This document shows positions 1 through 21,654 of a stretch of DNA of 64,000 bases, piece by piece (positions within the stretch are counted from its first letter, which is position 1; every line of letters starts with the position of its first letter). Below the pieces are notes generated by a model. That model did not search any database, was not told the origin of the DNA, and saw only the letters and a program-made list of their open reading frames with translations. Source of the stretch: Amphiscolops sp. MND2022. Taxonomy: Eukaryota. The position numbers and the translations under genes were made by a program. The DNA is taken from NCBI GenBank assembly GCA_964187785.1, contig OZ076413.1, forward strand, positions 70,308,001 to 70,372,000, written 5' to 3'.

Positions 1-2009
1 GGTGTTGAAAATTCAAGAAGCTTATTTTGCTAACGATGAAGTTGATACCGCTCGAGCCAACGACAGATTCTCTGGAGGATCCTCGGATCCAAGATAGATT
101 AAGGCGAAAGCGTAGTCAAGGAAATCTAGCTGTATTGGATTATTCTACTTCCCATGAACTGCCTCCTAAGAAGCTGAATCGACGGAAGAGGAAAGCAAAG
201 TTTGAACCTCAGGACCATTTGGGCCTTAACCAGCTTTTCAAAATTCTGAGTGGTAAAAAAGCCTGCCTTCGGGCTGGTGCCCAATTCTGGAACTTCCCCT
301 ATTTCAAAAAGTGGCATGGGACATGAGCCAATGCAAGATCATTATGCTTAGAATCAAAAATTCATGTCTGTCTCACACCCTAAACGATTTGATGTCACAC
401 CGTTCTTCAGGGTTCAATTACTTAGTAGCGGTTTTTTATTGCAGAAACTTGACTACAGTGCTACCCTACACTTTGAACCTTTTCCAGAGCTGTTTCAATG
501 CATTTTCATGATGACATTATTCGCACAATAAAGACTGGTAGCGGAATTCGTACCCGGGAGTTCTGGGCTTACAGCCCAGTGAACAACACCTGCGCCATGG
601 TCAACTTGCACCGACCTCATGTCTAATTTTAAGTGCTTTACATGAGTACAGACATTACGTACGCATTTGTGAAAAGTTACACCGCATAAAAACCTCATCG
701 GATATAGGTTTTTCTGACTCTACACATCTTTAGGTATGACGGATCATTCGAAGGTACCCCGAAACGTCAGAGCATGCATTACGTCTCGTGTTGAAAATTC
801 AAGAAGCTTATTTTGCTAACGATGAAGTTGATACCGCTCGAGCCAACGACAGATTCTCTGGAGGATCCTCGGATCCAAGATAGATTAAGGCGAAAGCGTA
901 GTCAAGGAAATCTAGCTGTATTGGATTATTCTACTTCCCATGAACTGCCTCCTAAGAAGCTGAATCGACGGAAGAGGAAAGCAAAGTTTGAACCTCAGGA
1001 CCATTTGGGCCTTAACCAGCTTCTCAAAGTTCTGAGTGGTAAAAAAGCCAGCCTTCGGGCTGGTGCCCAATTCTGGAACTTCCCCTATTTCAAAAAGTGG
1101 CATGGGACATGAGCCAATGCAAGATCATTATGCTTAGAATCAAAAATTCATGTCTGTCTCACACCCTAAACGATTTGATGTCACCGTTCTTCAGGGTTCA
1201 ATTACTTAGTAGCGGTTTTTTATTGCAGAAACTTGACTACAGTGCTACCCTACACTTTGAACTTTTTCCAGAGCTGTTTCAATGCATTTTCATGATGACA
1301 TTATTCGCACAATAAAGACTGGTAGCGGAATTCGTACCCGGGAGTCCTGGGCTTACAGCCCAGTGAACAACACCTGCGCCATGGTCAACTTGCACCGACC
1401 TCATGTCTAATTTTAAGTGCTTTACATGAGTACAGACATTACGTACGCATTTGTGAAAAGTTACACCGCATAAAAACCTCATCGGATATAGGTTCTTCTG
1501 ACTCTACACATCTTTAGGTATGACGGATCATTCGAAGGTACCCCGAAACGTCAGAGCATGCATTACGTCTCGTGTTGAAAATTCAAGAAGCTTATTTTGC
1601 TAACGATGAAGTTGATACCGCTCGAGCCAACGACAGATTCTCTGGAGGATCCTCGGATCCAAGATAGATTAAGGCGAAAGCGTAGTCAAGGAAATCTAGC
1701 TGTATTGGATAATTCTACTTCCCATGAACTGCCTCCTAAGAAGCTGAATCGACGGAAGAGGAAAGCAAAGTTTGAACCTCAGGACCATTTGGGCCTTAAC
1801 CAGCTTTTCAAAGTTCTGAGTGGTAAAAAAGCCAGCCTTCGGGCTGGTGCCCAATTCTGAAACTTCCCCTATTTAAAAAAGTGAGATGAGCCAATGCAAG
1901 ATCATTATGCTTGGAATCAAAAATTCATGTCTCACACCCTAAACGATTTGATGCCACACCGTTCTTCAGGGTTCACTTACATAGCAGCGGTTTTTTATTG
2001 CAGAAACTT
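1..2009. repeat. Tandem array A, left part (~785-bp unit, ~2.6 copies; continues past window start)
   Basis: The same sequence recurs at offsets 27, 813 and 1597. The third unit stops at CAGAAACTT (2001-2009), where the LTR element begins. Confidence 0.97.
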
Positions 2010-3528
2010 TGTTGTTGTTTGAAGAGATGTTTTTATGAAATGATTGAATTAAATTTGATAATGACTAGACAGTTTTTATTCAGTGAGAAGAGTAGAACAA
2101 ACTTGACTCTTGAAATAAAGTGAGGAAAGTGTGAATAAATTTGGCAGAAAATCAACAGCTCAAACTTATTCATACATAATTTCATGTGTCGAATTCTGAT
2201 TGGTTAATTCAAAAGTTAGCATCACAAACGAATATTTTCAGAAGCATCAACATATGTCGCCCGGGTTGAAGTCCTTCAATAAAAAAGAGTTCCATTTTCA
2301 GATACTTCATGGCACATTTTGTCGATAACGACAGTGAGAGAGAGAGAGAAGTGGGAGGAAGCGGCGAGTAGATCCCTTCAAAGAGAGCCACGGATATGGT
2401 CTGCGAGCCAATGATTCTGCGAAGTTGCCGGAATTCGAGATCTTCCTCAAGTGGCTTAAGTCGTCATGCTTGACTCCAGTGCCTGTTAAGACGCTCCAGC
2501 AGGTGCTTGGAGATCCTCGAGAGTTGGCGGTCATTCAGGAGCGGGTGGCAACACTTTTTTCAGAAGAGACTCTACGGAAGCTGCATTCGTTGGATGAACT
2601 TCCAGAGACTTGGAAGGGAGGAGTGCTGTTGTCAAACAGTGTTGAGACGCCTTCTAGAGTCCGTGCGGGAGTGAAACCACCGGGTGCGGTCTGTGTTCCG
2701 GCGGAATTGAGCGAGAGGGAGATAGTTTCAGAGGGACTTGGTGACACGGTTCTCGTGGAGAAGTCTAATTTCAGAGGCTTCCATGTTGACGTTGCTGAGG
2801 AAGGATTTTCTTTTTCTACTCTCGTTACTGGGAGGAAGATTTGGATGTTCCGTCTGCCTTCACCAACAGGGAAAAAGCTGGATGTGGCTGCACGAGATCG
2901 TAGAAAGTCTTTTTCTGAGACTATCAATCTTTTGCAAGGTCTCTCTAGGACGCAGGCCCGTCAGGTGTCTTGGACTCTTCTGGAGCCTGGGTGCACCGTC
3001 TACTTCCCGTACCACTTTTTGCACTCTGCTTGGACGGACGTGCAGCCTGGGTCAGTGTGCACGATGTACAGCTGCGAGAGGACGGTTGAAGAAGGATGGC
3101 GTACTGAGATGAGGCGAGCTGACCAGTACTTGGCTCTCGGGTGCCGCAGGGGGGAAGAATTCGGCTCCAGTTCCTGATGGAGGTAAGTGTATCAGTCTTC
3201 TTCATTTCTCTTCAAAAACTTGCTGATCAGTAATCATTTATAAGCTGCAAGAACGAAGTATTTGCTGTAAAATGCATCTTGTGATAAGTTGAAATGGTAT
3301 ATGAGGTAGTCAGTAGTCCAGTAGAGGGCATGCATTTTTGATCATAAGATAACAACGACTTGAACTAAGATAATGAATCGATAATTCCGATAAACTAGAG
3401 ACTAATAGGGAGCGAATAGGCTATTTCCCGCGGTCCGTATCCCAAACGGGTCATGAGGGGATACTTTTTGCGGCTGTGGGTTGACAGAAGAAACAAGATA
3501 TAACGAAAATAACCAAAGTATTCTGTCA
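2010..3528 (-). repeat. 3' LTR (inferred ~1.5 kb)
   Basis: Outer end TGTTG at 2010 matches 7578. The inner end is inferred from a purine tract GAGGGAAGAAAAG followed by TGACA on the minus strand at the integrase stop. Only the first 497 bp are confirmed by the second copy. Confidence 0.65.
2425..3177 (+). CDS. JmjC-domain 2OG-Fe(II) oxygenase carried antisense in the LTR (frame open from 2338; probable true start ATG 2309 is out of frame)
   Basis: FHVD (His 2782, Asp 2788), TGRKIW (Lys 2836) and EPGCTVYFPYHFLHS (His 3022) reproduce the JmjC HxD...H triad, the GxKxW motif and the PG-x4-P-x4-H motif. 250 codons with no stop. Confidence 0.82.
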   Translation: MPEFEIFLKWLKSSCLTPVPVKTLQQVLGDPRELAVIQERVATLFSEETLRKLHSLDELPETWKGGVLLSNSVETPSRVRAGVKPPGAVCVPAELSEREIVSEGLGDTVLVEKSNFRGFHVDVAEEGFSFSTLVTGRKIWMFRLPSPTGKKLDVAARDRRKSFSETINLLQGLSRTQARQVSWTLLEPGCTVYFPYHFLHSAWTDVQPGSVCTMYSCERTVEEGWRTEMRRADQYLALGCRRGEEFGSSS

Positions 3529-3541
3529 CTTTCTTCCCTCA
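3529..3541 (-). promoter_or_regulatory. Polypurine tract (candidate)
   Basis: GAGGGAAGAAAAG on the minus strand overlaps the integrase stop and is followed by TG. Confidence 0.55.
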
Positions 3542-5157
3542 AGGACCACTGGGGGTTCTGTCCACGATGGATTCGGCTAGCGGTAGCTTTCTGAGTTTAA
3601 TTATAGGTCGATTGAAGGTTTTCTTTGACGTTTTGATCTCTGCTACCCTCGGAATTTCATCATTTCCTTCAAATAGTTTCGAGACTCTGGCAAGTTTCCA
3701 CACAAGTGGGGCTTCGTTATCTTCAGCAACCAGTACAAGGTCGCCCACGTTTATACAAGGTCCAGTGCGAAACCATTTCTTCCGTATTTGAAGTTCCACA
3801 AGGTAGTCTCTGCTCCAAGACTTCCAGAAATCTTTTTGAATTCGTTGAAGGAGTTTTAGTCTCTGTCCTGCGGGTACATCTATGTCTTCTCTGGCTATTG
3901 AAAGTAGCGAGTCTCCAATGATGAAGTGTGCGGGCGTTATAGCTCGGCAGTCATTGGGGTCATCGGACATTGGAAAGAGTGGCCTTGAGTTTAAGATTGC
4001 TTCAATTTGCTGGAGAATTTTCAGGAGTTCTTCATATTTCAAAGTTTGAAGTCCGAGAATGCGTCTTAGATGTCTCTTCATACTCTTTACGGCGGCTTCC
4101 CATATACCACCGAAGTGTGGTGCTCGAGGGGGAATCGTAACCCATTCAGTGCCTTGACCTGTCAAGTGTCTCAGAAGTTGTTTCAACTGTCTCCTTCAAC
4201 GGTCTCTTTGTTAAGTGCTTGAATTCGTAGGAAATCATTTCTGGCCCCAATGAAGTTGCTTCCATTGTCTGTTATAATCTTCTTAGGGGCTCCTCTTCTT
4301 GATGTGAAGCGTTTGAGAGCCATTATGCAGTCCTCCTCGGTTTGGCTTGAAATTAATTCCAAATGAATGGCTTTCGTGACTAGGCAAATGAATACAGCGA
4401 TATAGATCTTGGGATTTTTCTTGTCCTTGACATTGAAAGGTCCAGCGAAATCTATTCCGCAGGTAGAAAACGCTCTAGCTGGGGTCACCCGTTCGCTAGG
4501 TAGGTCAGCCATTAGTTGAGTAGACTTTGATTGAAAACGGAAACATTTGACACAATTCTTGATGAAATTATTTACCGTTTTTCTTCCGTTCACAAGCCAG
4601 AATTGTTCTCGCATTGTATTGAGAGTTAGTATGCCTCCCCCATGAAATGTAACTTCCTGGTAATGACGAATTAGAAGCTCCTTTAAAGGTGAATCCTTGG
4701 CAATCAGATAGGGAAACTTCTTGTCTTCATGCAAACTTGATTGTGCGAGACGACCTCCGACACGAATGACATCAAGTTCTTTGTCAAGAAAGGGTGACAG
4801 GTTGAGGAGAGGGGATTTTCGTGTCAATTCAGCTTGTCTTCGCAGGATTGCGTACTCATCTGGGAACGTTTGTATCTGATCTTGTCTTATGATCTTTGCT
4901 ATTGCAATTCTACGAATTTCGGTTTCTGCTAATTGTGGAGTATGACAGTCGATTCTTATTCTCAGCACATTGATGAATCGTATGACGTTGCTGACGACGT
5001 TGATGAGCTTATTGAAGCTGCTGAATTTTTCAGTCGGCAGAACTTGAGTACTTGAATTGAGTGTTTGACTGCTTGTGAGTGTCATAACTTCTACAGGAGT
5101 AGATGTTCTGTTTTTGGCCTTGGTAGTTTCCTTCAGCTCACGTTTCTCTGGTAACAC
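3539..5157 (-). pseudogene. Bel/Pao integrase (frameshift near 4185)
   Basis: GIDFAGP, TDNGSNF and APHFGGIWEAAVKSMK (DDE triad), plus FWKSWSRDYL and RPIIKL C-terminal motifs, split across ORFs 4183-5157 and 3539-4186. Confidence 0.93.
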
Positions 5158-5504
5158 AGATGAGGATTGTACATCAAGTTGAGGCCAATAAGATTTTGGG
5201 TGTGGTAGCCATTCAGGGCCAGACCACCAAAGGCGAGAGTTAACGGTATCTTCAACTGAGATTCCCCCCTTGAGGCCAGATCCGCTGGGTTGTCATTTGT
5301 TGGAACGTGATTCCAGCTATCTCTTTTGATAATTTCTTGTATGTAGGAAACTCTGTTCGCTACAAATGTGGTCCAAGTTCGCGGGAGTTGCGATAACCAC
5401 TGGAGAGTGATGGTGGAGTCTGTCCATTGTTCAAGACCAGTTATCTGAAAAGTTGACATGGTAGCTTCAAGCAGTTTTGCGGCTAAGTGTGCACCACAAA
5501 GCAC
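5133..5504 (-). pseudogene. Bel/Pao RNase H, C-terminal half only
   Basis: LCGAHLAAKL, WTDSTITLQW, FVANRVSYIQ and NPADLASRG. Frameshift after ASRG. Confidence 0.92.
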
Positions 5505-7500
5505 GTGAGTTGAACCTTCTGTTTGCTTGATCTAAACTTTCTCCCAACTGACAATCTTGCTTGAAGGGTAATTTTACAGTGAAACAGTTGTCTTGATATT
5601 TTGTCGTGTTAACAAAATGTTGCTCACAGGCTTCTTCCTTGGAGAATTGACGACCCTTTGGAATTTCCTCCAACTCCCAAAATTGCTTTAAATCAAAGTC
5701 GACTGATGATTGGAAGGAACTAACGCTTGTCACTGATCTGCCAGGATTCGATCCACAGATTGTCCACCCGAATACTGTTTTGCGTGCGTAGATACCATCA
5801 CACACTTTGGTTCTTTCGTTTCCAATGACTTGTTCATAAAGATCAATTCCGATGATATCAATATTAGAAGGTTTTGCAAAATTTGGATCAGAAAGCTTGA
5901 TATTTGGAAACTTGATTAGCTCTGGTACTTTCAGCGGACTGGATGGAATAGAAGCTGTCAGTCGTGGTAAAATGAATGCTGAAACATCGTAGGAGATGGA
6001 ATTTTCATCAACAAATGTCAAATCAGTCTTTCCACGGGTAGTTGATTTTGATGAACATCCAATGCCATTGATTATTATCTCGGATTTGAGTCGTTTCAGC
6101 TGCAAACGTTGTACACATTCCTCACTAATAAATGTCAATTCCGATCCACTATCGAGAAGTGCTCGACACTTGTGAGCAATACCAGTTTTCGACATGACTG
6201 ACACTTCCACTGTAGGTAAGACGTGTTTCGCAGAAAATATCCCCTCGTGACCCAAATGCGAATTGGCCACGGGGATCTGTTCAGTTTGCTCACCAGGGGT
6301 GTGGAGCAGGGTATGGTACAGTTTTTGACACTTCTGACACCTTGACTTGGATTTGCAGGCCTTAGAATTGTGACCTGGTCGTAAACAATTGAAACACAAC
6401 TTCTTGATTTTGATAAATTTCTGTTTGTCTTCATAACTCATAATCTTGAATTTATCACACTGGTGTAGTTTGTGTCCCTCGGAGCAGTTGATGCAAGACA
6501 CGCTAGCAGTAGAGCCTTGGTAACCTTGAACTTTGTTTGATTCTTGAATTTTCTTGACTAACTTGCTTGATGAGGCTGAGGCTTCACGTGCTCGGGCTTT
6601 ATCTTCAAGAAACCGCTTTAGGCTGTCCATGCTCTGAGCATCATCGCCCTTGCTGTGAAGTTCCCATTGTCTGCGGCTCTGGGTGTCCAACTTTTTTGCT
6701 ATGATATGAACCCAGATGAAGTCTGATGGTCCGACATCTAATCCCATTCCTTGTAGGGCCATCGTGTTTTCCATGAATATGCTAATCAATTTCCTCAGCT
6801 GATCAGGCGATTCTTCTTTGATCGGACGAAATTCAAAGATGGCTTCTAGATGAGTGTGAATTATTATTCGTTTGTTCGCATAGATGTCTTGGAGAAGTTT
6901 TTTGGCAACCTCGTAATTCGCACTGGAAGTAGGTAAATGCGATAGAAGACGAGCAGGCTCATCTTTCAGCGAAGACTTGAGATAGTGGAGTTTCTGAATG
7001 TTGCTAAGCGTACGATTGCTGTCCACAGTGCTGTTGAATGTGTCTGAGAATGGTGTCCACTCAGAGTATTTCCCAGTAAATGTAGGAAGACTGAGTTTCG
7101 GCAGTTTCAATCCAGAAGTGGATGTTTGTTGACTATCTTCAGTCACATTCTGTGGTTGTCTCGGGGCGGCGTCAGCAGCCTGTTCGATCCGTTCTTCGGC
7201 CATTTCAAGCACTTTGATCGTTGTTTTGATCCTGAGATCATTGTCATCAATTCTAGACCTTTCAGCTTCGATCTCTTCCGAGATTGTGTCACCTTCAGTC
7301 AATTCGTTGATGATGCGTTCGTTTAGTTCTTCAATCTTGGACACTTGTTCCCTGCACCTTTCAAGAGAACACTTGATCTTTGAGATTTCCAGCAGCGTTA
7401 GTGTGCTAGGTTCCTTCTCAAGGATTTCTTTCACTGAGTTTTCTGTCCTGGTAATTGTTCCGAGATGGCCAGATCTCGTTCTTTTCAAAGCTTCAGCCAT
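5467..7500 (-). CDS. Bel/Pao Gag-protease ORF, ending at the RT deletion junction
   Basis: ATG at 7500 (MAEALK). Motifs LKLPKLSLPTFTGKYSEW, CINCSEGHKLHQC, CFNCLRPGHNSKAC and ALLDSGSELTFI. The pre-RT segment FTVKLPFK...RRFNS then joins RNase H sequence out of frame. Confidence 0.92.
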   Translation of the reverse strand: MAEALKRTRSGHLGTITRTENSVKEILEKEPSTLTLLEISKIKCSLERCREQVSKIEELNERIINELTEGDTISEEIEAERSRIDDNDLRIKTTIKVLEMAEERIEQAADAAPRQPQNVTEDSQQTSTSGLKLPKLSLPTFTGKYSEWTPFSDTFNSTVDSNRTLSNIQKLHYLKSSLKDEPARLLSHLPTSSANYEVAKKLLQDIYANKRIIIHTHLEAIFEFRPIKEESPDQLRKLISIFMENTMALQGMGLDVGPSDFIWVHIIAKKLDTQSRRQWELHSKGDDAQSMDSLKRFLEDKARAREASASSSKLVKKIQESNKVQGYQGSTASVSCINCSEGHKLHQCDKFKIMSYEDKQKFIKIKKLCFNCLRPGHNSKACKSKSRCQKCQKLYHTLLHTPGEQTEQIPVANSHLGHEGIFSAKHVLPTVEVSVMSKTGIAHKCRALLDSGSELTFISEECVQRLQLKRLKSEIIINGIGCSSKSTTRGKTDLTFVDENSISYDVSAFILPRLTASIPSSPLKVPELIKFPNIKLSDPNFAKPSNIDIIGIDLYEQVIGNERTKVCDGIYARKTVFGWTICGSNPGRSVTSVSSFQSSVDFDLKQFWELEEIPKGRQFSKEEACEQHFVNTTKYQDNCFTVKLPFKQDCQLGESLDQANRRFNSRALWCTLSRKTA

Positions 7501-7562
7501 TTCAAATTTAACAATCCTTCTGTTCAATAGATTGAATTTCCAAGTTTCGAAATTCCTGGGTA

Positions 7563-7574
7563 GGCGCGGCACCA
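7563..7574 (-). promoter_or_regulatory. Primer binding site TGGTGCCGCGCC
   Basis: 3 nt inside the LTR boundary. TGGTGCCG is complementary to the 3' end of His/Phe-type tRNAs. Confidence 0.75.
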
Positions 7575-7577
7575 AAA

Positions 7578-8076
7578 TGTTGTTGTTTGAAGAGTTGTTT
7601 TTATGAAATGATTGAATTAAATTTGATAATGACTAGACAGTTTTTATTCAGTGAGAAGAGTAGAACAAACTTGACTCTTGAAATAAAGTGGGGAAAGTGT
7701 GAATAAACGTGGCAGAAAATCAACAGTTCAAACTTATTCATACATAATTTCATGTGTCGAATTCTGATTGGTTAATTCAAAAGTTAGCATCACAAACGAA
7801 TATTTTCAGAAGCATCAACATATGTCGCCCGGGTTGAAGTCCTTCAATAAAAAAGAGTTTCATTTTCAGATACTTCATGGCACATTTTGTCGATAACGAC
7901 AGTGAGAGAGAGAGAGAGAAGTGGGAGGAAGCGGCGAGTAGATCCCTTCAAAGAGAGCCACGGATATGGTCTGCGAGCCAATGATTCTGCGAAGTTGCCG
8001 GAATTCGAGATCTTCCTCAAGTGGCTTAAGTCGTCATGCTTGACTCCAGTGCCTGTTAAGACGCTCCAGCAGGTGC
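7578..8076 (-). repeat. 5' LTR remnant (499 bp, truncated)
   Basis: Matches 2010-2506 with 6 substitutions and one extra GA by my count. Identity stops at CAGGTGC inside the JmjC ORF. Confidence 0.93.
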
Positions 8077-8094
8077 AATAACCTCAATAACCTT

Positions 8095-11000
8095 AACAAT
8101 AACCTCATCTGATTTAGGTTTTTCTGACTCTACACATCTTTAGGTATGACGGATCACTCGAGGGTTTCCCGAAACGTCAGAGCATGCATTGGGTCTCGTG
8201 TTGAAAATTCAAGAAGCTTATTTTGCTAACGATGAAGTTGATACCGCTCCAGCCAACGACAGATTCTCTGGAGGATCCTCGGATCCAAGATAGATTAAGG
8301 CGAAAGCGTAGTCAAGGAAATCTAGCTGTATTGGATAGTTCTACTTCCCATGAACTGCCTCCTAAGAAGCTGAATCGACGGAAGAGGAAAGCAAAGTTTG
8401 AACCTCAGGACCATTTGGGCCTTAACCAGCTTTTCAAAGTTCTGAGTGGTAAAAAAAACAGTCTTCAGGCTGGTACCCAATTCTGAAACTTCCCCTATTT
8501 AAAAAAGTGGCATGAGCCAATGCAAGATCATTATGCTTGGAATCAAAAATTCATGTCTCACACCCTAAACGATTTGATGCCACACCGTTCTGCAGGGTTC
8601 ACTTTCATAGCAGCGGTTTTATATTGCAGAAACTTGACTAATGTGCTACCCTATACTTTGAACCTTGTTCAGAGCTGTTTCAATACATGTTCATGATGAC
8701 ATTCGCACAATAAAGATTGGTAGCGGAATTCGTACCCGGGAGTCCTGGGCTTACAGCCCAGTAAACAACACCTGCACCATGGTCAATTTGCACCGACATC
8801 ATGTCTAATTTTAAGTGCTTTACAAAAGTACAGACATTGCGTACGCACATGTGAAAAGTTACACCGCATAACAATAACCTAATCTGATTTAGGTTTTTCT
8901 GACTCTACACATCTTTAGGTATGACGGATCACTCGAGGGTTTCCCGAAACGTCAGAGCATGCATTGGGTCTCGTGTTGAAAATTCAAGAAGCTTATTTTG
9001 CTAACGATGAAGTTGATACCGCTCGAGCCAACGACATTCTCTGGAGGATCCTCTGATCCAAGATAGATTAAGGCGAAAGCGTAGTCAAGGAAATCTAGCT
9101 GTATTGGATTATTCTACTTCCCATGAACTGCCTCCTAAGAAGCTGAATCGACGGAAGAGGAAAGCAAAGTTTGAACCTCAGGACCATTTGGGCCTTAACC
9201 AGCTTTTCAAAGTTCTGAGTGGTAAAAAAAGCCAGCCTTCGGGCTGGTGCCCAATTCTGGAACTTCCCCTATTTAAAAAAATGGCATGAGCCAATGCAAG
9301 ATTATGCTTGGAATCAAAAATTCATGTCTCACACCCTAATCGATTTGATGTCACACCGTTCTTCAGGGTTCAATTACTTAGCGGTTTTTTATTGCAGAAA
9401 CTTGACTACAGTGCTACCCTACACTTAGAACCTTGTTCAGAGCTGTTTCAATGCATGTTCATGATGACATTCGCACAATAAAGATTGGTAGCGGAATTCG
9501 TACCCGGGAGTCCTGGGCTTACAGCCCAGTAAACAACACCTGCGCCATGGTCAATTTGCACCGACCTCATGTCTAATTTGAAGTGCTTTACAAAAGTACA
9601 GACATTGCGTACGCATATGTGAAAAGTTACACCGCATAACAATAACCTCTTCGGATATAGGTTTTTCTGACTCTACACATCTTTAGGTATGACGGATCAC
9701 TCGAAGGTACCCCGAAACAAGAGAGCATGCATTACGTCTCGCGTTGAAAACTCAAAAAGCCTATTTTGCTAACAATGAAGTTGATACCGCTCGAGCCAGC
9801 GACAGATTCTCTGGAGGATCCTCGGATCCAAGGGGTATTAAGGCGAAAGCGTAGTCAAGGAAATCTAGCTGTATTGGATCAAACTACTTACTACGAACCA
9901 CCTCCTAAAAAGCTGAATCGACGGAAGAGGAAAGCAAAGTTTGACCCTCGGGGCTGTTTGGGCCTCAACCAGCTTTTCAAAGTTCTGAGTGGTAAAAAAG
10001 CCAGCCTTCGGGCTGGTGCCCAATTCTGGAACTTACCATATTCAAAAAAGTGGCATGAGCCAATGCAAGATCAATATGCTTGGAATCAAAAAATCATGTC
10101 TCACACCCTAATCGATTTGATGCCACACCGTTCTTCAGGGTTCACTAACTTAGCAGCGGTTTTTTATTGCAGAAACTTGACTAATGTGCTACCCTACACT
10201 TTGAAACTTGTTCAGAGCTGTTTCAATGCATGTCTGATGACATTCGCACAATAAAGATTGGTAGCGGGATTCGTACCCGGGAGTCCTGGGCTTACAGCCC
10301 AGTAAACAACACCTGCGCCATGGTCAATTTGCACCGACCTCATGTCTAATTTTAAGTGCTTTACAAAAGTACAGACATTGCGTACGCACATGTGAAAAGT
10401 TACACCGCATAACAATAACCTCATCTGATATAGGTTTTTCTGACTCTACACATCTTTAGGTATGACGGATCACTCGAGGGTTCCCCGAAACGCCAGAGCA
10501 TGCATTACGTCTCGTGTTGAAAATTCAAGAAGCTTATTTTGCTAACGATGAAGTTGATACCGCACCAGCCGACGACAGATTCTCGGGAGGATCCTCGGAT
10601 CCAAGATAGATTAAGGCGAAAGCGTAGTCAAGGAAATCTAGCTGTATTGGATAGTTCTACTTCCCATGAACTGCCTCCTAAGAAGCTGAATCGACGGAAG
10701 AGGAAAGTAAAGTTTGAACCTCAGGACCATTTGGGCCTTAACCAGCTTTTCAAAGTTCTGAGTGGTAAAAAAAACAGTCTTCAGGCTGGTACCCAATTCT
10801 GAAACTTCCCCTATTTAAAAAAGTGGCATGAGCCAATGCAAGATCATTATGCTTGGAATCAAAAATTCATGTCTCACACCCTAAACGATTTGATGCCACA
10901 CCGTTCTGCAGGGTTCACTTACATAGCAGCGGTTTTTTATTGCAGAAACTTGACTAATGTGCTACCCTAAACTTTGAACCTTGTTCAGAGCTGTTTCAAT

Positions 11001-14000
11001 ACATGTTCATGATGACATTCGCACAATAAAGATTGGTAGCGGAATTCGTACCCGGGAGTCCTGGGCTTACAGCCCAGTAAACAACACCTGCGCCATGGTC
11101 AACTTGCACCGACCTCATGTCTAATTTTAAGTTCTTTACAAAAGTACAGACATTGCGTACGCACATGTGAAAAGTTACACCGCATAACAATAACCTCATC
11201 TGATTTAGGTTTTTCTGACTCTACACATCTTTAGGTATGACGGATCATTCGAAGGTACCCCGAAACGTCAGAGCATGCATTGGGTCTCGTGTTGAAAATT
11301 CAAGAAGCTTATTTTGCTAACGATGAAGTTGATACCGCTCCAGCCAACGACAGATTCTCTGGAGGATCCTCGGATCCAAGATAGATTAAGGCGAAAGCGT
11401 AGTCAAGGAAATCTAGCTGTATTGGATTATTCTACTTCCCATGAACTGCCTCCTAAGAAGCTGAATCTACGGAAGAGGAAAGCAAAGTTTGAACCTCAGG
11501 ACCATTTGGGCCTTAACCAGCTTTTCAAAGTTCTGAGTGGTAAAAAAGCCAGCCTTCGGGCTGGTGCCCAATTCTGAAACTTCCCCTATTTAAAAAAGTG
11601 GCATGAGCCAATGCAAGATCATTATGCTTGGAATCAAAAATTCATGTCTCACACCCTAAACGATTTGATGCCACACCGTTCTGCAGGGTTCACTTACATA
11701 GCAGCGGTTTTTTATTGCAGAAACTTGACTAATGTGCTACCCTAAACTTTGAACCTTGTTCAGAGCTGTTTCAATACATGTTCATGATGACATTCGCACA
11801 ATAAAGATTGGTAGCGGAATTCGTACCCGGGAGTCCTGGGCTTACAGCCCAGTAAACAACACCTGCGCCATGGTCAATTTGCACCGACCTCATGTCTAAT
11901 TTTAAGTTCTTTACAAAAGTACAGACATTGCGTACGCACATGTGAAAAGTTACACCGCATAACAATAACCTCATCTGATTTAGGTCTTTCTGACTCTACA
12001 CATCTTTAGGTATGACGGATCACTCGAGGGTTTCCCGAAACGTCAGAGCATGCATTGGGTCTCGTGTTGAAAATTCAAGAAGCTTATTCTGCTAACGATG
12101 AAGTTGATACCGCTCCAGCCAACGACAGATTCTCTGGAGGATCCTCGGATCCAAGATAGATTAAGGCAAAAGCGTAGTCAAGGAAATCTAGCTGTATTGG
12201 ATAGTTCTACTTCCCATGAACTGCCTCCAAAGAAGCTGAATCGACGGAAGAGGAAAGCAAAGTTTGAACCTCAGGACCATTTGGGCCTTAACCAGCTTTT
12301 CAAAGTTCTGAGTGGTAAAAAAGCCAGCCTTCGGGCTGGTGCCTAATTCTGGAACTTCCCCTATTTAAAAAAATGGCATGAGCCAATGCAAGATTATGCT
12401 TGGAATCAAAAATTCATGTCTCACACCCTAATCGATTTGATGTCACACCGTTCTTCAGGGTTCAATTACTTAGCGGTTTTTTATTGCAGAAACTTGACTA
12501 CAGTGCTACCCTACACTTTGAACCTTGTTCAGAGCTGTTTCAATGCATGTTCATGATGACATTCGCACAATAAAGATTGGTAGCGGAATTCGTACCCGGG
12601 AGTCCTGGGCTTACAGCCCAGTAAACAACACCTGCGCCATGGTCAATTTGCACCGACCTCATGTCTAATTTGAAGTGCTTTACAAAAGTACAGACATTGC
12701 GTACGCATATGTGAAAAGTTACACCGCATAACAATAACCTCTTCAGATATAGGTTTTTCTGACTCTACACATCTTTAGGTATGACGGATCACTCGAAGGT
12801 ACCCCGAAACAAGAGAGCATGCATTACAACTCGCGTTGAAAACTCAAAAAGCCTATTTTGCTAACAATGAAGTTGATACCGCTCGAGCCAGCGACAGATT
12901 CTCTGGAGGATCCTCGGATCCAAGGGGTATTAAGGCGAAAGCGTAGTCAAGGAAATCTAGCTGTATTGGATCAAACTACTTACTACGAACCACCTCCTAA
13001 AAAGCTGAATCGACGGAAGAGGAAAGCAAAGTTTGACCCTCAGGGCTGTTTGGGCCTCAACCAGCTTTTCAAAGTTCTGAGTGGTAAAAAAGCCAGCCTT
13101 CGGGCTGGTGCCCAATTCTGAAACTTCCCCTATTTAAAAAAGTGGTATGAGCCAATGCAAGATCATTATGCTTGGAATCAAAAATTCATGTCTCACACCC
13201 TAAACGATTTGATGCCACACCGTTCTGCAGGGTTCACTTTCATAGCAGCGGTTTTATATTGCAGAAACTTGACTAATGTGCTACCCTATACTTTGAACCT
13301 TGTTCAGAGCTGTTTCAATACATGTTCATGATGACATTCGCACAATCAAGATTGGTAGCGGAATTCGTACCCGGGAGTCCTGGGCTTACAGCCCAGTAAA
13401 CAACACCTGCGCCATGGTCAACTTGCACCGACCTCATGTCTAATTTTAAGTGCTTTACATAAGTACAGACATTACGTACGCATATGAGAAAAGTTACACC
13501 GCATAACAAAAACCTCATCGGATATAGGTTTCTCTGACTCTACACATCTTTAGGTATGACGGATCATTCGAAGGTACCCCGAAACGTCAGAGCATGCATT
13601 GGGTCTCGTGTTGAAAATTCAAGAAGCTTATTTTGCTAACGATGAAGTTGATACCGCTCGAGCCAACGACAGATTCTCTGGAGGATCCTCGGATCCAAGA
13701 TAGATTAAGGCGAAAGCGTAGTCAAGGAAATCTAGCTGTATTGGATTATTCTACTTCCCATGAACTGCCTCCTAAGAAGCTGAATCTACGGAAGAGGAAA
13801 GCAAAGTTTGAACCTCAGGACCATTTGGGCCTTAACCAGCTTTTCAAAGTTCTGAGTGGTAAAAAAGCCAGCCTTCGGGCTGGTGCCCAATTCTGGAACT
13901 TCCCCTATTTAAAAAAATGGCATGAGCCAATGCAAGATTATGCTTGGAATCAAAAATTCATGTCTCACACCCTAATCGATTTGATGTCACACCGTTCTTC

Positions 14001-15950
14001 AGGGTTCAATTACTTAGCGGTTTTTTATTGCAGAAACTTGACTACAGTGCTACCCTACACTTTGAACCTTGTTCAGAGCTGTTTCAATGCATGTTCATGA
14101 TGACATTCGCACAATAAAGATTGGTAGCGGAATTCGTACCCGGGAGTCCTGGGCTTACAGCCCAGTAAACAACAGCTGCGCCATGGTCAATTTGCACCGA
14201 CCTCATGTCTAATTTGAAGTGCTTTACAAAAGTACAGACATTGCGTACGCATATGTGAAAAGTTACACCGCATAACAATAACCTCTTCGGATATAGGTTT
14301 TTCTGACTCTACACATCTTTAGGTATGACGGATCACTCGAAGGTACCCCGAAACAAGAGAGCATGCATTACGTCTCGCGTTGAAAACTCAAAAAGCCTAT
14401 TTTGCTAACAATGAAGTTGATACCGCTCGAGCCAGCGACAGATTCTCTGGAGGATCCTCGGATCCAAGGGGTATCAAGGCGAAAGCGTAGTCAAGGAAAT
14501 CTAGCTGTATTGGATCAAACTACTTACTACGAACCACCTCCTAAAAAGCTGAAGCGACGGAAGAGGAAAGCAAAGTTTGACCTTCAGGGCTGTTTGGGCC
14601 TCAACCAGCTTTTCAAAGTTCTGAGTGGTAAAAAAGCCAGCCTTCGGGCTGGTGCCCAATTCTGGAACTTACCCTATTCAAAAAAGTGGCATGAGCCAAT
14701 GCAAGATCAAAATGCTTGGAATAAAAAAATCATGTCTCACACCCTAAACGATTTGATGCCACACCGTTCTTCAGGGATCACTAACTTAGCAGCGGTTTTT
14801 TATTGCAGAAACTTGACTAATGTGCTACCCTAAACTTTGAACCTTGTTCAGAGCTGTTTCAATACATGTTCATGATGACATTCGCACAAAAAAGATTGGT
14901 AGCGGGATTCGTACCCGGGAGTCCTGGGCTTACAGCCCAGTAAACAACACCTGCGCCATGGTCAATTTGCACCGACCTCATGTCTAATTTTAAGTGCTTT
15001 ACAAAAGTACAGACATTGCGTACGCACATGTGAAAAGTTACACCGCATAACAATAACCTCATCTGATATAGGTTTTTTTGACTCTACACATCTTTAGGTA
15101 TGACGGATCACTCGAGGGTTCCCCGAAACGTCAGAGCATGCATTACGTCTCGTGTTGAAAATTCAAGAACCTTATTTTGCTAACGATGAACTTGATACCG
15201 CTCCAGCCAACGACAGATTCTCTGGAGGATCCTCGGATCCAAGATAGATTAAGGCGAAAGCGTAGTCAAGGAAATCTAGCTGTATTGGATAGTTCTACTT
15301 CCCATGAACTGCCTCCTAAGAAGCTGAATCGACGGAAGAGGAAAGCAAAGTTTGAACCTCAGGACCATTTGGGGCTTAACCAGCTTTTCAAAGTTCTGAG
15401 TGGTAAAAAAACCAGTCTTCAGGCTGGTACCCAATTCTGAAACTTCCCCTATTTAAAAAAGTGGCATGAGCCAATGCAAGATCATTATGCTTGGAATCAA
15501 AAATTCATGTCTCACACCCTAAACGATTTGATGCCACACCGTTCTGCAGGGTTCACTTACATAGCAGCAGTTTTTTATTGCAGAAACTTGACTGATGTGC
15601 TACCCTAAACTTTGAACCTTGTTCAGAGCTGTTTCAATACATGTTCATGATGACATTCGCACAATAAAGATTGGTAGCGGAATTCGTACCCGGGAGTCCT
15701 GGACTTACAGCCCAAAAAACAACACCTGCGCCATGGTAAACTTGCACCGACCTCATGTCTAATTTTTAGTGCTTTACATAAATACAGAAATTACGTACGC
15801 ACATGTGAAAAGTTACACCGCAAAACAATAACCTCATCTGATATAGGTTTTTCTGACTCTACACTTCTCTAGGTATGACGGATCACTTGAAAGTACCCCA
15901 AAACGTCAGAGCATGCGTTACGTCTCGCGTTGAAAACTCAAAAAGCTTAT
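8095..15950. repeat. Tandem array A, right part (~775-bp unit, ~10 copies)
   Basis: Unit offsets 8223, 8998, 9766, 10539, 11314, 12089, 12858, 13633, 14402, 15177. Confidence 0.97.
9766..10254 (+). pseudogene. Longest open copy of the basic, NLS-rich reading frame in unit A (unknown protein)
   Basis: LRRKRS and PPKKLNRRKRK are followed by an aromatic-rich segment. Open for 162 codons here and 155 at 13633; broken by TGA or frameshift in most other copies. No family recognised. Confidence 0.35.
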
Positions 15951-16195
15951 TTTGATAATGATGAAGCAAAACCCCTCATTTACACAATTGAACAACTGGT
16001 ATGTTAATGTAGAAGCAATCGCCAAACAGCAACAAGTTTCTTTTTGTTGAACACTTTTTTTTGTTAGTATTTGTGTTTCGGGGACTTGCGCGACGCGTAT
16101 GAAGTCCTCAGGGAAGAGTTCGAGAGGGAACCGGAGGGAACTGCACTTCGCGTTTAAAATAACGGTTATATCAAATATGAGAAGTTTCCTAAATG

Positions 16196-16600
16196 GTTTT
16201 TGCGGTGTCGTTACATACTTTTTCGGTTGTCCCATTCTACTTTTAGGCTTCCATACGTTCTTTTTTGCGGTGTCGTTACATACTTTCTTCGGTTGTGTCA
16301 TTTTACTTTTAGGCTTCCATACGTTCTTTTTTTGCGGTGTCGTTACATACTTTTTCGGTTGTCCCATTCTACTTTTAGGCTTCCATACGTTTTTTTTGCG
16401 GTGTCGTTACATACTTTCTTCGGTTGTCCCATTCTACTTTTAGGCTTCCATACGTTTTTTTGCGGTGTCGTTACATACTTTCTTCGGTTGTCCCATTTTA
16501 CTTTTAGGCTTCCATACGTTCTTTTTTGCGGTGTCGTTACATACATACTTCGGTTGTCCCATTTTACTTTTAGGCTTCCATGCGTTCTTCTTGGCGGTGT
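16196..16600. repeat. ~65-bp minisatellite, 6 copies plus a partial
   Basis: TGCGGTGTCGTTACATACTTT(C)TTCGGTTGTCCCATT(C/T)TACTTTTAGGCTTCCATACGTTC(T)n at 16201, 16266, 16333, 16397, 16461, 16527. Confidence 0.95.
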
Positions 16601-17188
16601 CAAGTCACATATTTTCCCCTTAGGCGTCTCATACAGTTTCAGGTGTCATTTTTCCCGTTTTCATTCGACTTACCCCCGAATAACCCCCCATTCCCACAGC
16701 ACTCGTCATCTTCTTCTCAAACCCCAGCCCTCTGACTTTTTCCCCTTTTGACTACCCCCATCCCCACAACGGTCTTCTAGTGTCCTCCCCTCGACTTTAA
16801 CCCCTCTCTCACATGTTCACAATTGTTTCAAATTTTAGTATGCTTTACTATTTTATTAGCAATTTGCCCTGTATATTGGCAATTAGTTAGAATTGATTTA
16901 GTTTGTTATCACAGTTTTCAAATAGTGCTTTTACTGAGACAAAGATAATACACTAGACTTTAGTAAAAAAAAGTTCAAACTTACCCATTCGAAACAATCA
17001 GAAATTTCACTCTTCTGTTGTCTCAGAATGACTTCAAACGTTCGGAAAATTTGAAAAATGCTTCAATGAAATTCTGAGACACTGGTTTTTGATTGGTTGA
17101 GAGGAAACGTGGGGAATTTTTTTAATTCAAATACAAAATGAACAAAATGTACTTCCGTGCTGAGCATTGAATTTGATCGAAGAAAATT

Positions 17189-17240: not shown

Positions 17241-18634
17241 TTTTTGACGTTTTTGCACTTAGCTGGTTAGGCAATGATTTCTGTAGGTTGAACAATAGCT
17301 AGCACATTTTTGAAAGCACGATGTGTAACCGATAAACTTTTTGGCTATAGCTTCAATTTTTGCACATCTTGGATCACCGATGAATAAATGATAAACTTTC
17401 ACATCATATAAATCAAGCCACCACAGTCACTCTTTTTATGGATAGATTTAGGAGAAACTTTTCTGTATTAGGTTTCGGCATACCCTCAGGCTGGATATTG
17501 ATAGGCCATTTCGAGTAGGCTTCAGATGTCTCAAAATAGTACGAGATTCCTTTCTTTGGTAGGAACGAGAACTCACTCACTAGCTTGTGCTTTCGATGGC
17601 TGCAATTTGACATTCGCCGAAGCCAAAGAACACAATAGGCACGCTCTCAGAGATCACATCTCTATCTCTCTCTGACCAACAGAAGTAGAAGTCTTGAAGT
17701 AGAAGTTATTCAGAAACTTTCATAACTCAACTCCTTCCAAAAACTTTTACTCCATCACTTTTTGTAGAATGGCCTTCCAAAAATTGTTTTATGAGTGGCG
17801 CTGCCTGAGTACACCCGTCCAGTGCGTCTGGACTATATAAGATGCTGGTATAACGAAGATAACATCGACGTAAAAGATTTCAGCCGCGACACGTGCCACA
17901 AAGAAACGATTACGGTTTCCCCAAGAACTTTGACGTGGACAATTTTATTCAAGTTTTTACTTGACGTGATTTGTCACACTGTTCTTCAGGGTTCAATTAC
18001 TTTGCAGCGGTTTTTTATTGCAGAAACTTGACTAACGTGCTACCCTACACTTTGAACCTTGTTCAGAGCTGTTTAAATACAAGTTCATGACATTATCCGC
18101 ACAATAAAGATTGGTAGCGGGATTCGTACCCGGGAGTCCTGGAATTACATCCCAAAAAACAACACCTGCGTCATAGTCAACTTGCACCAACCTCATGTCT
18201 AATTTTTAGTGCTTTACATAAGTACAGAAATTACGTACGCACATGTGAAAAGTTACACCGCATAACAATAACATAATCGGATATAGGTTTTTCTGACTCT
18301 ACACATCTTTAGGTATGACGGATGACTTGAAAGAACCCCGAAACGTCAGAGCATGCGTTACGTCTCGCGTTGAAAACTCAAAAAGCATATTTTGCTAATG
18401 ATGAAGCAAAACCCCTCACTTACACAATTGAACTGGTATGTTAATGTAGAAGCAATCGCCAAACAGCAACAAGTTTCGTTTTGTTGAACACTTTACTTTT
18501 GTTAGTATTTGTGTTTCGGGAACTTGCGCGACGCGTATGAAGTCCTCAGGGAAGAGTTCGAGAGGGAACCGGAGGGAACTGCACTTCGCGTTTGAAACGA
18601 CGGTTATATCAAATATGAGAAGTTTCCTAAATGG

Positions 18635-19008
18635 TTTTTGCGGTGTCGTTACAAACTTTCTTCGGTTGTCCCATTCTACTTTTAGGCTTCCATACGTTCT
18701 TTTTTGCGGTGTCGTTACATACTTTCTTCGGTTGTCTCATTTTACTTTTAGGCTTCCATACGTTCTTTTTTTGCGGTGTCGTTACATACTTTTTCGGTTG
18801 TCCCATTTTACTTTTAGGCTTCCATACGTTCTTTTTTGCGGTGTCGTTACATACTTTCTTCGGTTGTCCCATTTTACTTTTAGGCTTCCCTACGTTCTTT
18901 TTTTGCGGTGTCGTTACATACTTTCTTCGGTTGTCCCATTTTACTTTTAGGCTTCCATACGTTCTTCTTGGCGGTGTCGTTACATACTTTCTTCGGTTGT
19001 CCCATTTT
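18635..19008. repeat. ~65-bp minisatellite, 5 copies plus a partial
   Basis: Same unit as at 16196. Confidence 0.95.
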
Positions 19009-21227
19009 TGGCTATAGCTTCAACGTTTGCACATCTTGGATCACCGATGAAAACGATAAACTTTTACACCAATCAATCAAGCCACCACAGTCACTCTTTT
19101 TATGGATAGATTTAGGATAAACTTTTCTGTATTAGGTTTCGGCTTACCCTCAGGCTGGATTGACGGGCCATTTCGAGTAGGCTTCAGATGTCTTGAAACG
19201 GTACGAGATTCCTTTGGTGGGAACGAGAACTCACTCACTAGCTTGTGCTTTGGATGGCTGCAATTTGACATTCGCCGAAGCCAAAGAACACAATAGGCAC
19301 GCTCTCAGAGAGCACACATATCTCTCTCTCTCTCTCTCTCTCTGACCAACAGAAGTAGAAGTCTTGAAGTAGAAGTTATTCAGAAACTTTCATAACTCAA
19401 CTTTCAAAAACTTCTACTCCATCACTTTTTGTAGAATGGCCTTCCGAAAATTGTTTTATGAATGGCCCCTTCCTGGGTACACCCGTCCAGTGCGCGTGGA
19501 CTGTATAAGATGCTGGTATAACGAAGATAACATCGACGTAGAAATTTTTAGCCGAGACACGTACCACAAAGAAACGATTACGGTTTCCAAGAACTTTGAG
19601 GTGGACAATTTTATTCAAGTTTTTACTTGACGAAGTCGAAAAGAAGTTCCCCGGGAGACGCGGGGATCGCGAATACCGAGATCTGGTCAATCTCGTGGAG
19701 TACATGAGTGACTTCATACGACCAACGCCATTATTCGTGTCCTCGGATCGGCCTCACCAGCCACCAAGGATTTCGTTTATCTTGGAAAAAAATTTAACAA
19801 AGTACTCGTGGTTGCGACATGTCGAAGTTAAACGCTGTTCTTAACAAAGCCGATAGATTGAGACTGCGAGTTCAGGACAAACGGGAAATCAGATGTACTC
19901 ATCTGGCTGATCTGATTCAGCTTAGGGACGTCCGCGCAGAGCTGGGAATCAGCAGACTGAACATATAGCACGGCCTCAAATCCCTTTCAGTTAAAGCAGT
20001 CCTGAGCACAGTCAATGGCTCCAAAATCTGGCAGCGATGCTGTATGAAACAGCTCGAGCTCGATGTATTAGGTTTCGGCTAACCCTCAGGCTGGATTGAT
20101 GGGCCATTTCGAGTAGGCTTCAGAAGTCTTAAAATAGTAAGAGATTCCTTTGGTGGGAACGAGAACTCACTCACTAGCTTGTGCTTTCGAGGGCTGCCAT
20201 TTGACATTCGCCGAAGCCAAAGAACACAATAGGCACGCTCTCAGAGAGCACATATATATCTCTCTCTCTCTGACCAACAGAAGTAGAAGTCTTGAAGTAG
20301 AAGTTATTCAGAAACTTTCATAACTCAACTTTCAAAAACTTCTACTCCATCACTTTTTGTAGAATGGCCTTCCGAAAATTGTTTTATGAGTGGCGCTGCC
20401 TGAGTACACCCGTCCAGTGCGTCTGGACTATATAAGATGCTGGTATAACGAAGATAACATCGACGAAAAAGATTTCAGCCGCGACACGTGCCACAAAGAA
20501 ACGATTACGGTTTCCAAGAACTTTGACGTGGACAATTTTATTCAAGTTTTTACTTGACGTGATTTGTCACACTGTTCTTCAGGGTTCAATTACTTTGCAG
20601 CGGTTTTTTATTGCAGAAACTTGACTAACGTGCTACCCTACACTTTGAACCTTGTTCAGAGCTGTTTAAATACAAGTTCATGACATTATCCGCACAATAA
20701 AGATTGGTAGCGGGATTCGTACCCGGGAGTCCTGGAATTACATCCCAAAAAACAACACCTGCGTCATAGTCAACTTGCACCAACCTCATGTCTAATTTTT
20801 AGTGCTTTACATAAGTACAGAAATTACGTACGCACATGTGAAAAGTTACACCGCATAACAATAACATAATCGGATATAGGTTTTTCTGACTCTACACATC
20901 TTTAGATATGACGGATGACTTGAAAGAACCCCGAAACGTCAGAGTATGCGTTACGTCTCGCGTTGAAAACTCAAAAAGCATATTTTGCTAATGATGAAGC
21001 AAAACCCCTCATTTACACAATTGAACTGGTATGTTAATGTAGAAGCAATCGCCAAACAGCAACAAGTTTCTTTTTGTTGAACACTTTACTTTTGTTAGTA
21101 TTTGTGTTTCGGGAACTTGCGCGACGCGTATGAAGTCCTCAGGGAAGAGTTCGAGAGGGAACCGGAGGGAACTGCACTTCGCGTTTGAAACGACGGTTAT
21201 ATCAAATATGAGAAGTTTCCTAAATGG

Positions 21228-21532
21228 TTTTTGCGGTGTCGTTACAAACTTTCTTCGGTTGTCCCATTCTACTTTTAGGCTTCCATACGTTCTTTTTTGC
21301 GGTGTCGTTACATACTTTCTTCGGTTGTCTCATTTTACTTTTAGGCTTCCATACGTTCTTTTTTTGCGGTGTCGTTACATACTTTTTCGGTTGTCCCATT
21401 TTACTTTTAGGCTTCCATACGTTCTTTTTTGCGGTGTCGTTACATACTTTCTTCGGTTGTCCCATTTTACTTTTAGGCTTCCATACGTTCTTCTTGGCGG
21501 TGTCGTTACATACTTTCTTCGGTTGTCCCATT
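21228..21532. repeat. ~65-bp minisatellite, 4 copies plus a partial
   Basis: Same unit as at 16196. Confidence 0.95.
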
Positions 21533-21654
21533 TTTGGCTATAGCTTCAACGTTTGCACATCTTGGATCACCGATGAAAACGATAAACTTTTACATCATAT
21601 CAATCAAGCCACCACAGTCACTCTTTTTATGGATAGATTTAGGATAAAATTTTC

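Follow-up and report, generated by a model that had tools for sequence, protein, structure and literature searches.

A predicted JmjC-type oxygenase gene carried antisense to gag-pol in BEL/Pao retrotransposons

What is a JmjC-like open reading frame (ORF) doing on the opposite strand of a retrotransposon, and does it belong to that element? The locus that raises this question lies in a 64,000-nucleotide stretch of contig OZ076413.1 from Amphiscolops sp. MND2022, hereafter the window, in which positions 2010–7820 are a degenerate BEL/Pao long terminal repeat (LTR) retrotransposon that lies on the minus strand inside a satellite array. The gene in question, ORFX, lies on the plus strand of this element. 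An earlier note, made from the letters of the window, had described it as a JmjC oxygenase gene encoded antisense in a BEL/Pao element. Both parts of that description hold: ORFX is true cargo of the BEL/Pao lineage, opposite gag-pol, and profile, fold and conserved triad agree in predicting a JmjC Fe(II)/2-oxoglutarate (2OG) oxygenase. The best explanation overall is, in our view, a BEL/Pao-borne antisense JmjC gene whose product would be nuclear, chromatin-acting and directed against silencing, an explanation that we hold with about as much confidence as doubt.

The reading frame behind this prediction is open over 250 codons, from 2425 to the stop codon at 3175–3177, as the earlier note had reported, and it stays open further back, to 2338 (279 codons). 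The codons of the HxD...H iron triad, the GRKIW lysine and the RKRR basic patch that the note had picked out all lie in the ORFX frame (GRKIW at 2830–2844, with its K at 2836; RKRR at 2356–2367). Upstream of the open body (2338–3177) are a conserved ATG at 2309 and the first ATG, at 2254, a distance of 2 nt from the 3′ LTR boundary. The note had called the ORF uninterrupted, which is not true of the whole gene in the window: frameshifts, one of them in a (GA)7 tract, split both ATGs from the body, and contigs of other copies have 2 nt fewer at 2338. Intact copies at four loci (L003, L004, L005 and L007) encode 291 aa from a Met (M-x-x-F-V-D) that is kept across subfamilies, and the gene is intact at 287–292 aa in several subfamilies. 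Pol is broken in the window, as had been noted; of the BEL/Pao domain set, DUF1759, aspartyl protease, Integrase_H2C2, rve and DUF5641 are present, and in a sister copy the segment deleted from the window codes for RVT_1 plus the Peptidase_A17 region of Pao. With ORFX frameshifted and the reverse transcriptase deleted, the window element is inactive.

Profile searches, a structure model and conserved residues together identify the predicted product as a single-domain JmjC-type Fe(II)/2OG oxygenase of ~291 aa when intact. Residues H160, D162, G176, K178, W180, P235 and H240 are near-invariant in a 24-member alignment that reaches down to 19% identity. A profile of these 24 sequences matched PHF8 (E = 4.7e-9), KDM7A (7.5e-7), PHF2 (2.9e-6) and C. 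elegans KDM7A (4.3e-5), whereas JMJD6 (0.07), NO66 (0.14), KDM2A (0.28) and also JMJD7 fell in a weak range of 0.05–0.4. In the profile alignment, the triad and K178 fall on PHF8 H247, D249, H319 and K264; K178, part of a G-R-K-x-W motif, is thus aligned to the Lys of PHF8 G-E-K, which we take to be the ligand of the 2OG C5-carboxylate. Pfam, where JmjC oxygenases of the cupin/DSBH type are covered by PF02373, PF13621 and PF08007, at E ≤ 1 matched JmjC or Cupin_8 in 10 of the 24 family members (best 4.7e-7 and 8.2e-6, respectively), and a phmmer search of the window ORF against PDB, a weak single-sequence query, returned NO66 alone (E = 0.2).

The profile and structure comparisons that the earlier note had proposed also recovered a JmjC fold. 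From a 35-sequence alignment, AlphaFold (AF2) produced a model of the ORFX protein with a predicted local distance difference test score (pLDDT) of 92.2 and a predicted template modeling score (pTM) of 0.89; 10 sequences had given a pLDDT of 33 only. Foldseek found 421 matches in PDB at E ≤ 0.001, and the top 50 listed were all JmjC proteins. PHF2, KDM7A and ceKDM7A led (E ~1e-7, template modeling score, TM, 0.55–0.59), with TYW5, FIH, JMJD5 and KDM2A also present. Matches among the SwissProt models included JMJ20, JHD1, PHF2, KDM7 and JMJD4, Atlas clusters gave a TM of 0.65–0.68 to JmjC/KDM2 (KDM2 0.67), and giant-virus JmjC proteins were likewise among the matches.

Profile and model evidence puts the predicted catalytic core nearest to two groups of lysine demethylases, KDM7 (PHF8/KDM7A/PHF2) and KDM2. 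With KDM7 proteins (PHF8/KDM7B, KDM7A, PHF2 and C. elegans KDM7A) first, and then KDM2, the core shares the double-stranded beta-helix JmjC fold; each residue of the iron triad, and the 2OG lysine, has its aligned counterpart in KDM7, which provides the best profile and fold matches. The differences are nonetheless large: structural alignments give ~11–15% identity, the human proteins have ~940–1100 aa against 291 aa, and ORFX, which has neither a PHD finger nor another reader domain, is retrotransposon-encoded and known from sequence and a model. Because the N-terminal PHD finger, which in KDM7 proteins reads H3K4me3, is absent, the ORFX protein is not a member of the KDM7 family and is KDM7-like in its catalytic core only.

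The same comparisons bear on the main rival, a non-histone hydroxylase. Here the anatomy would be the same, and the enzyme would be a protein, tRNA or RNA hydroxylase like JMJD4, JMJD5, JMJD7, TYW5, FIH or NO66, with a host factor (e.g. in translation) or the Gag or integrase of the element itself as its target. Such an enzyme suits a 291-aa single-domain protein without a reader domain, and TYW5, FIH and JMJD5 nearly equal KDM7/PHF2 in Foldseek score, with JMJD4 and JMJ20 among the SwissProt-model matches. The family profile speaks against it, clearly favoring KDM7/PHF (E = 5e-9 to 4e-5) over JMJD6, JMJD7, NO66 and KDM2A (0.05–0.4). We regard a hydroxylase as a serious possibility that nevertheless falls well short of probable.

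A one-off insertion, a possibility that the earlier note had raised, does not describe what the genome holds, for other copies and subfamilies carry ORFX. A tblastn search of the 1.07-Gb genome returned at least 156 ORFX matches at 29–100% identity, many with open frames, and a second query, taken from a 35%-identical branch, returned 138 further or overlapping ones. At 29 of the 30 loci from the first query, ORFX and DUF5641/integrase stand tail-to-tail, separated by much the same distance each time, the exception being L022, where ORFX alone was visible. This layout is kept where ORFX is 43–47% and integrase ~65% identical, and it is the same in the 35%-identical L054–L063 subfamily. Beyond this genome, L049 (GCA_013332895.1) has the identical BEL/Pao layout at 66% identity, the metagenome scaffold L051 has a BEL/Pao layout with ORFX at 26% identity, and the Tara Oceans scaffold L052, likewise at ~26%, combines a 1763-aa BEL/Pao polyprotein with P0065, for which the family alignment gives 22% identity. 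Every BEL/Pao subfamily examined here, and BEL/Pao contigs from other sources (22–66% identity), thus carry ORFX as a stable module. A profile search of 1.84 billion representatives returned 49 relatives.

Comparison of dN/dS (ratio of nonsynonymous to synonymous substitution rates) among copies, which the earlier note had proposed, used pairwise Nei–Gojobori estimates. Ratios between lineages were 0.23 (L004 vs L049), 0.27 (L011 vs L049) and 0.24 (L023 vs L043), indicating that ORFX is kept by purifying selection; L004 vs L011 gave 0.49. Only among the youngest copies (e.g. L003 vs L004, L004 vs L005) was the ratio about 1, as expected from decay after insertion.

These results bear directly on whether ORFX is a passenger, that is, a host gene fragment caught once and without a role for the element. 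The window copy and many others are broken, which would suit a passenger, but inserted elements normally end up broken, and many other copies have intact ORFs. Moreover, a passenger is hard to reconcile with dN/dS of 0.23–0.27, or with a position and orientation kept across subfamilies and sources at 22–66% identity. A passenger role is therefore disfavored by selection, and we consider it very improbable.

One relative stands apart from this pattern. P0055, 19% identical, lies in L050 (10001–20483) on a 137-kb contig, where its neighbors are a 1228-aa C2H2/endonuclease-VII-like ORF and an ORF for an Ulp1/adenoviral-type (C5-like) cysteine protease, with no adjoining BEL/Pao pol in this neighborhood. 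The JmjC family may thus also ride in another kind of mobile element.

Where the gene lies relative to the LTR determines how it is transmitted. The earlier note had placed the whole ORF inside a ~1.5-kb LTR, where each insertion would double it and solo LTRs would retain it. Two features of the window invite that reading: 2010–2506 recurs at 7578–8076 (499 bp, 98.4% identity), and a purine tract lies beside the pol stop, which had been taken for an integrase-adjacent polypurine tract (PPT) marking the LTR edge. However, the terminal direct repeat is 242–250 bp in four independent full-length copies (L034, L037, L038 and L039), starting with TGTTG and finishing with AACA, equivalent to window 2010–2252 and 7578–7820. 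Three of these copies are flanked by 5-bp target-site duplications (TSDs; GTGAC, GTGAT and ACATG), the pair of the fourth agrees at 4 of 5 bases, and a primer binding site (PBS)-like TGG... stands directly at the inner edge of the 5′ LTR. When the genome was searched with the 243-bp LTR, all 40 scored matches covered positions 1 to 241–243, and the matches were mostly paired, with ~4.7–6.8 kb between partners. The LTR length to be annotated for this element family is therefore 243 bp. With its start 2 nt into the internal region, ORFX gains no second copy when the element inserts and has no place in a solo LTR of 243 bp.

The longer repeat in the window appears as such because a 256-bp remnant adjoins the 5′ LTR. 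The earlier note had seen the start of the ORF in a second LTR copy; its first 82 bp are indeed present twice, but the second occurrence belongs to the remnant of an upstream tandem element and not to an LTR. Tandem arrangements that explain these extra 256 bp occur elsewhere, as an LTR-internal-LTR-internal layout at L031 and L032 and as LTR triplets on C10 of genome G000 (40044936/40051316/40057696 and 54571292/54577309/54583760). The purine tract, the sole good purine run, follows the pol stop ~1.3 kb from the 3′ LTR, hence not at an LTR edge, and it is absent from sister subfamilies. A gene inside a 1.5-kb LTR is thus refuted for this subfamily, and we leave it next to no probability.

Other loci were considered as genes within LTRs and rejected. 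At L031 and L032, two ORFX copies ~6 kb apart had seemed to fit a gene in an LTR but are in fact tandem elements with a common LTR, the repeat running on into integrase. At L052, what had looked like a long LTR containing the 3′ half of the gene has a PBS-like sequence, an LTR start beside gag and a bounded 851-bp repeat, all of which fit a tandem or a cyclic assembly path laid out as in the window. Elements of this family are often LTR-internal-LTR-internal-LTR tandems with a common middle LTR, and in one array the identity is 100% across 2.2 kb or more.

The ORFX mRNA would be read antisense from a start within the 3′ LTR or at its inner edge, a start suggested by the ATG that abuts the LTR and by a CCAAT box ~100 bp upstream. 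This 18-nt CCAAT motif is a candidate shared or bidirectional promoter element. A near-identical 18-nt motif, ATTCTGATTGGTT(A/G)ATTC, lies upstream of the JmjC gene in L052 (~7690–7710) and in L053, so that the motif is common to elements whose proteins are just ~22% identical; it is absent upstream of ORFX in subfamilies L020, L023–L028 and L043–L045.

Indirect evidence that ORFX may have its own spliced antisense mRNA comes from the L054 subfamily, in which the gene is split. There, a 101-aa upstream ORF homologous to the ORFX N-terminus (E = 5e-7) joins the JmjC exon in phase 0 over a 103-nt GT...AG interval with a pyrimidine tract, and of 10 copies from the subfamily, 9 have this interval. 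Only in antisense orientation to the genomic RNA can such an intron survive retrotransposition, which would make the intron-bearing ORFX a natural case of a retroelement retaining a spliced gene. On the same strand after the JmjC gene, a 64-aa ORF occurs in both repeat copies of L052 (1679–1873 and 8841–9035) and in L053 (1512–1706); this could represent another small antisense ORF, or an exon.

From such a transcript, the mechanism that we propose would proceed as follows. The N-terminal 60 aa of the ORFX protein form a short basic region with a conserved G-R-x-R-R-V-P motif, which resembles a nuclear localization signal and could take the protein into the nucleus. There it would demethylate histones or another chromatin protein, or hydroxylate such a protein, at or near element copies. 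This activity would thereby counter transcriptional silencing of those copies. A narrower version, in which an animal BEL/Pao clade encodes its own KDM7-like histone lysine demethylase, expresses it from an antisense 3′ LTR promoter and erases H3K9/H3K27/H4K20 methylation on its own copies, is conceivable but doubtful; if true, the retroelement would encode a chromatin 'eraser' and use it as a weapon against silencing.

Silencing could also be blocked without catalysis, by a scaffold that binds heterochromatin proteins. This is suggested by S. pombe Epe1, a putative JmjC histone demethylase that is reported to oppose heterochromatin non-enzymatically (PMC7192584). The metal triad and 2OG lysine of the ORFX family are, however, near-invariant down to 19% identity, the pattern expected of an active enzyme. 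The invariant triad disfavors a non-catalytic role, which we hold to be improbable.

Several points weigh against an antisense chromatin-acting enzyme. Pfam found no match for the window ORFX alone, nor for the intact L004 protein, and detected no PHD, chromo, Tudor or CXXC reader domain in the ORFX protein. Among JmjC-only proteins, histone demethylases are rarer than hydroxylases of proteins or tRNA. The likeness to KDM7 was judged on the profile and fold of the core; KDM7 specificity is set by residues of the substrate pocket. None of the 49 relatives among 1.84 billion representatives is a characterized enzyme. As for expression, no canonical AATAAA was found after the ORFX stop on the plus strand, and a search for an RNA run with ORFX sequence found none, the four runs examined being contigs of repeat-like depth (hundreds to thousands) that is uninformative on strand or expression. 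Finally, a purine-rich PPT is not evident beside the 3′ LTR (2253–2275, sense strand), where one would be expected.

Antisense genes in this part of a retroelement have parallels. Retroviruses have them, e.g. HBZ of human T-cell leukemia virus type 1 (HTLV-1). To our knowledge, neither HBZ nor the antisense ORFs of plant Retand-lineage Gypsy elements are known to encode enzymes. The latter lie between pol and the 3′ LTR (PMC11963269). ORFX resembles both in being an additional gene on the other strand between pol and the 3′ LTR, with transcription presumably driven from that LTR's side; it differs in that its predicted product is a recognizable oxygenase and its carrier a BEL/Pao element.

Mobile elements with other dioxygenases are also on record. 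Phalaenopsis Ty3/Gypsy elements carry an ORF for an AlkB-type 2OG dioxygenase, an N6-methyladenosine (m6A) RNA demethylase that is active in vitro (PMC9289625). As with ORFX, an LTR lineage has a fixed extra 2OG/Fe(II) dioxygenase ORF proposed to counter host control (PMC9289625), but the two differ in the branch of 2OG oxygenases (AlkB, JmjC) and in the type of element (plant Gypsy, animal BEL/Pao); for AlkB, in vitro work has demonstrated an RNA substrate, and for ORFX the activity is predicted. Fungal DNA transposons carry TET/JBP dioxygenase genes (PMC12730594) and are alike in pairing a mobile element with a 2OG/Fe(II) dioxygenase for an epigenetic mark used in transposon silencing; they are not retrotransposons, and TET/JBP, which is not a JmjC enzyme, acts on 5-methylcytosine (5mC) in DNA. 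Rotifer LTR elements hold captured ORF3s, with no mention of JmjC (PMC5408684). A full-text literature search for a JmjC gene in an LTR retrotransposon found no description. The general idea therefore has precedents (AlkB, TET/JBP and antisense ORFs), and the search suggests that JmjC in BEL/Pao is undescribed in the literature covered.

Host genomes silence LTR elements largely via histone and DNA methylation. Known element-borne countermeasures are few: VANC, carried by plant Mutator-like (VANDAL) DNA transposons, fungal TET/JBP and orchid AlkB. A JmjC gene conserved under selection in a clade of animal retrotransposons would add histone or protein oxidation, and an animal case, to these, and would supply a compact (~290 aa), reader-less JmjC enzyme with a directly identifiable target. 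This BEL/Pao clade may modify chromatin or proteins for its own benefit. Whatever the substrate, ORFs of the ORFX type should be annotated as transposon cargo and not as host genes.

Features of the window at and around the BEL/Pao element (positions as in the window; sources of assignment in the last column where applicable)
Feature	Position	Strand	Remarks
Tandem array, 775–785-bp units	1–15966, interrupted by element		host context
3′ LTR, 243 bp, TG...CA	2010–2252	-	238/243 identical to 5′ LTR
CCAAT (Y-box-like) motif ATTCTGATTGGTTAATTC, 18 nt	2193–2210	n/a	inside LTR, ~100 bp upstream of conserved ORFX start
ORFX, predicted JmjC oxygenase, accessory gene	2254–3177	+	antisense to gag-pol, between pol stop and 3′ LTR
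(GA)7 tract	2336–2349	+	window out of frame vs intact copies
Predicted catalytic core	2782–3024	+	H 2782, D 2788, K 2836 (aligned to PHF8 K264), H 3022
Spacer, ORFX stop to pol stop	3178–3538	n/a	holds purine tract (~3517–3530)
DUF5641, C-terminal domain of pol	4186–3539	-	Pfam; tail-to-tail with ORFX
Integrase (H2C2 zinc finger, rve core)	5157–4183	-	Pfam
Internal deletion junction, ~1.2 kb missing	5502/5505	-	RVT_1 and Peptidase_A17 there in other copies
gag (DUF1759) and aspartyl protease ORF	7575–5467	-	ORF list and Pfam
PBS region next to 5′ LTR	7548–7577	-	sense strand reads TT TGGTGCCGCG...
5′ LTR, 243 bp	7578–7820	-	
Remnant, first 256 bp of ORFX region (= 2253–2506)	7821–8076	+	from truncated upstream tandem element
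Filler, 17 bp	8077–8093	n/a	satellite array back from 8094

The insertion site itself has been altered. The array is broken off at 2009 (unit position 438) and picked up again at 8094 (unit position 672), so that 234 bp of a satellite unit are gone and the filler has been added. The window element is a rearranged copy, which is why it has no TSD. L033 shares its flank with the window locus and is therefore a segmental duplicate of it.

The array, at least 16 kb long (1–2009 and 8094–15966), has in every unit a frame of 82–162 aa that starts MLTMKLIPLEP... and contains two basic patches; a Pfam search with this frame gave zero matches. The 775–785-bp array could represent a satellite, or else a gene or transposable element fragment amplified in tandem. 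Beyond it, 66-bp tandem repeats whose copies are 93–95% identical occur at 16197–16601, 18635–19008 and 21228–21534, with a period of ~2.6 kb. Adjoining them are 435-bp pieces (17972–18406 and 20565–20999) with 88% identity to part of the 775-bp unit, and together the 66-bp repeats and 435-bp pieces look like a higher-order repeat at the array border.

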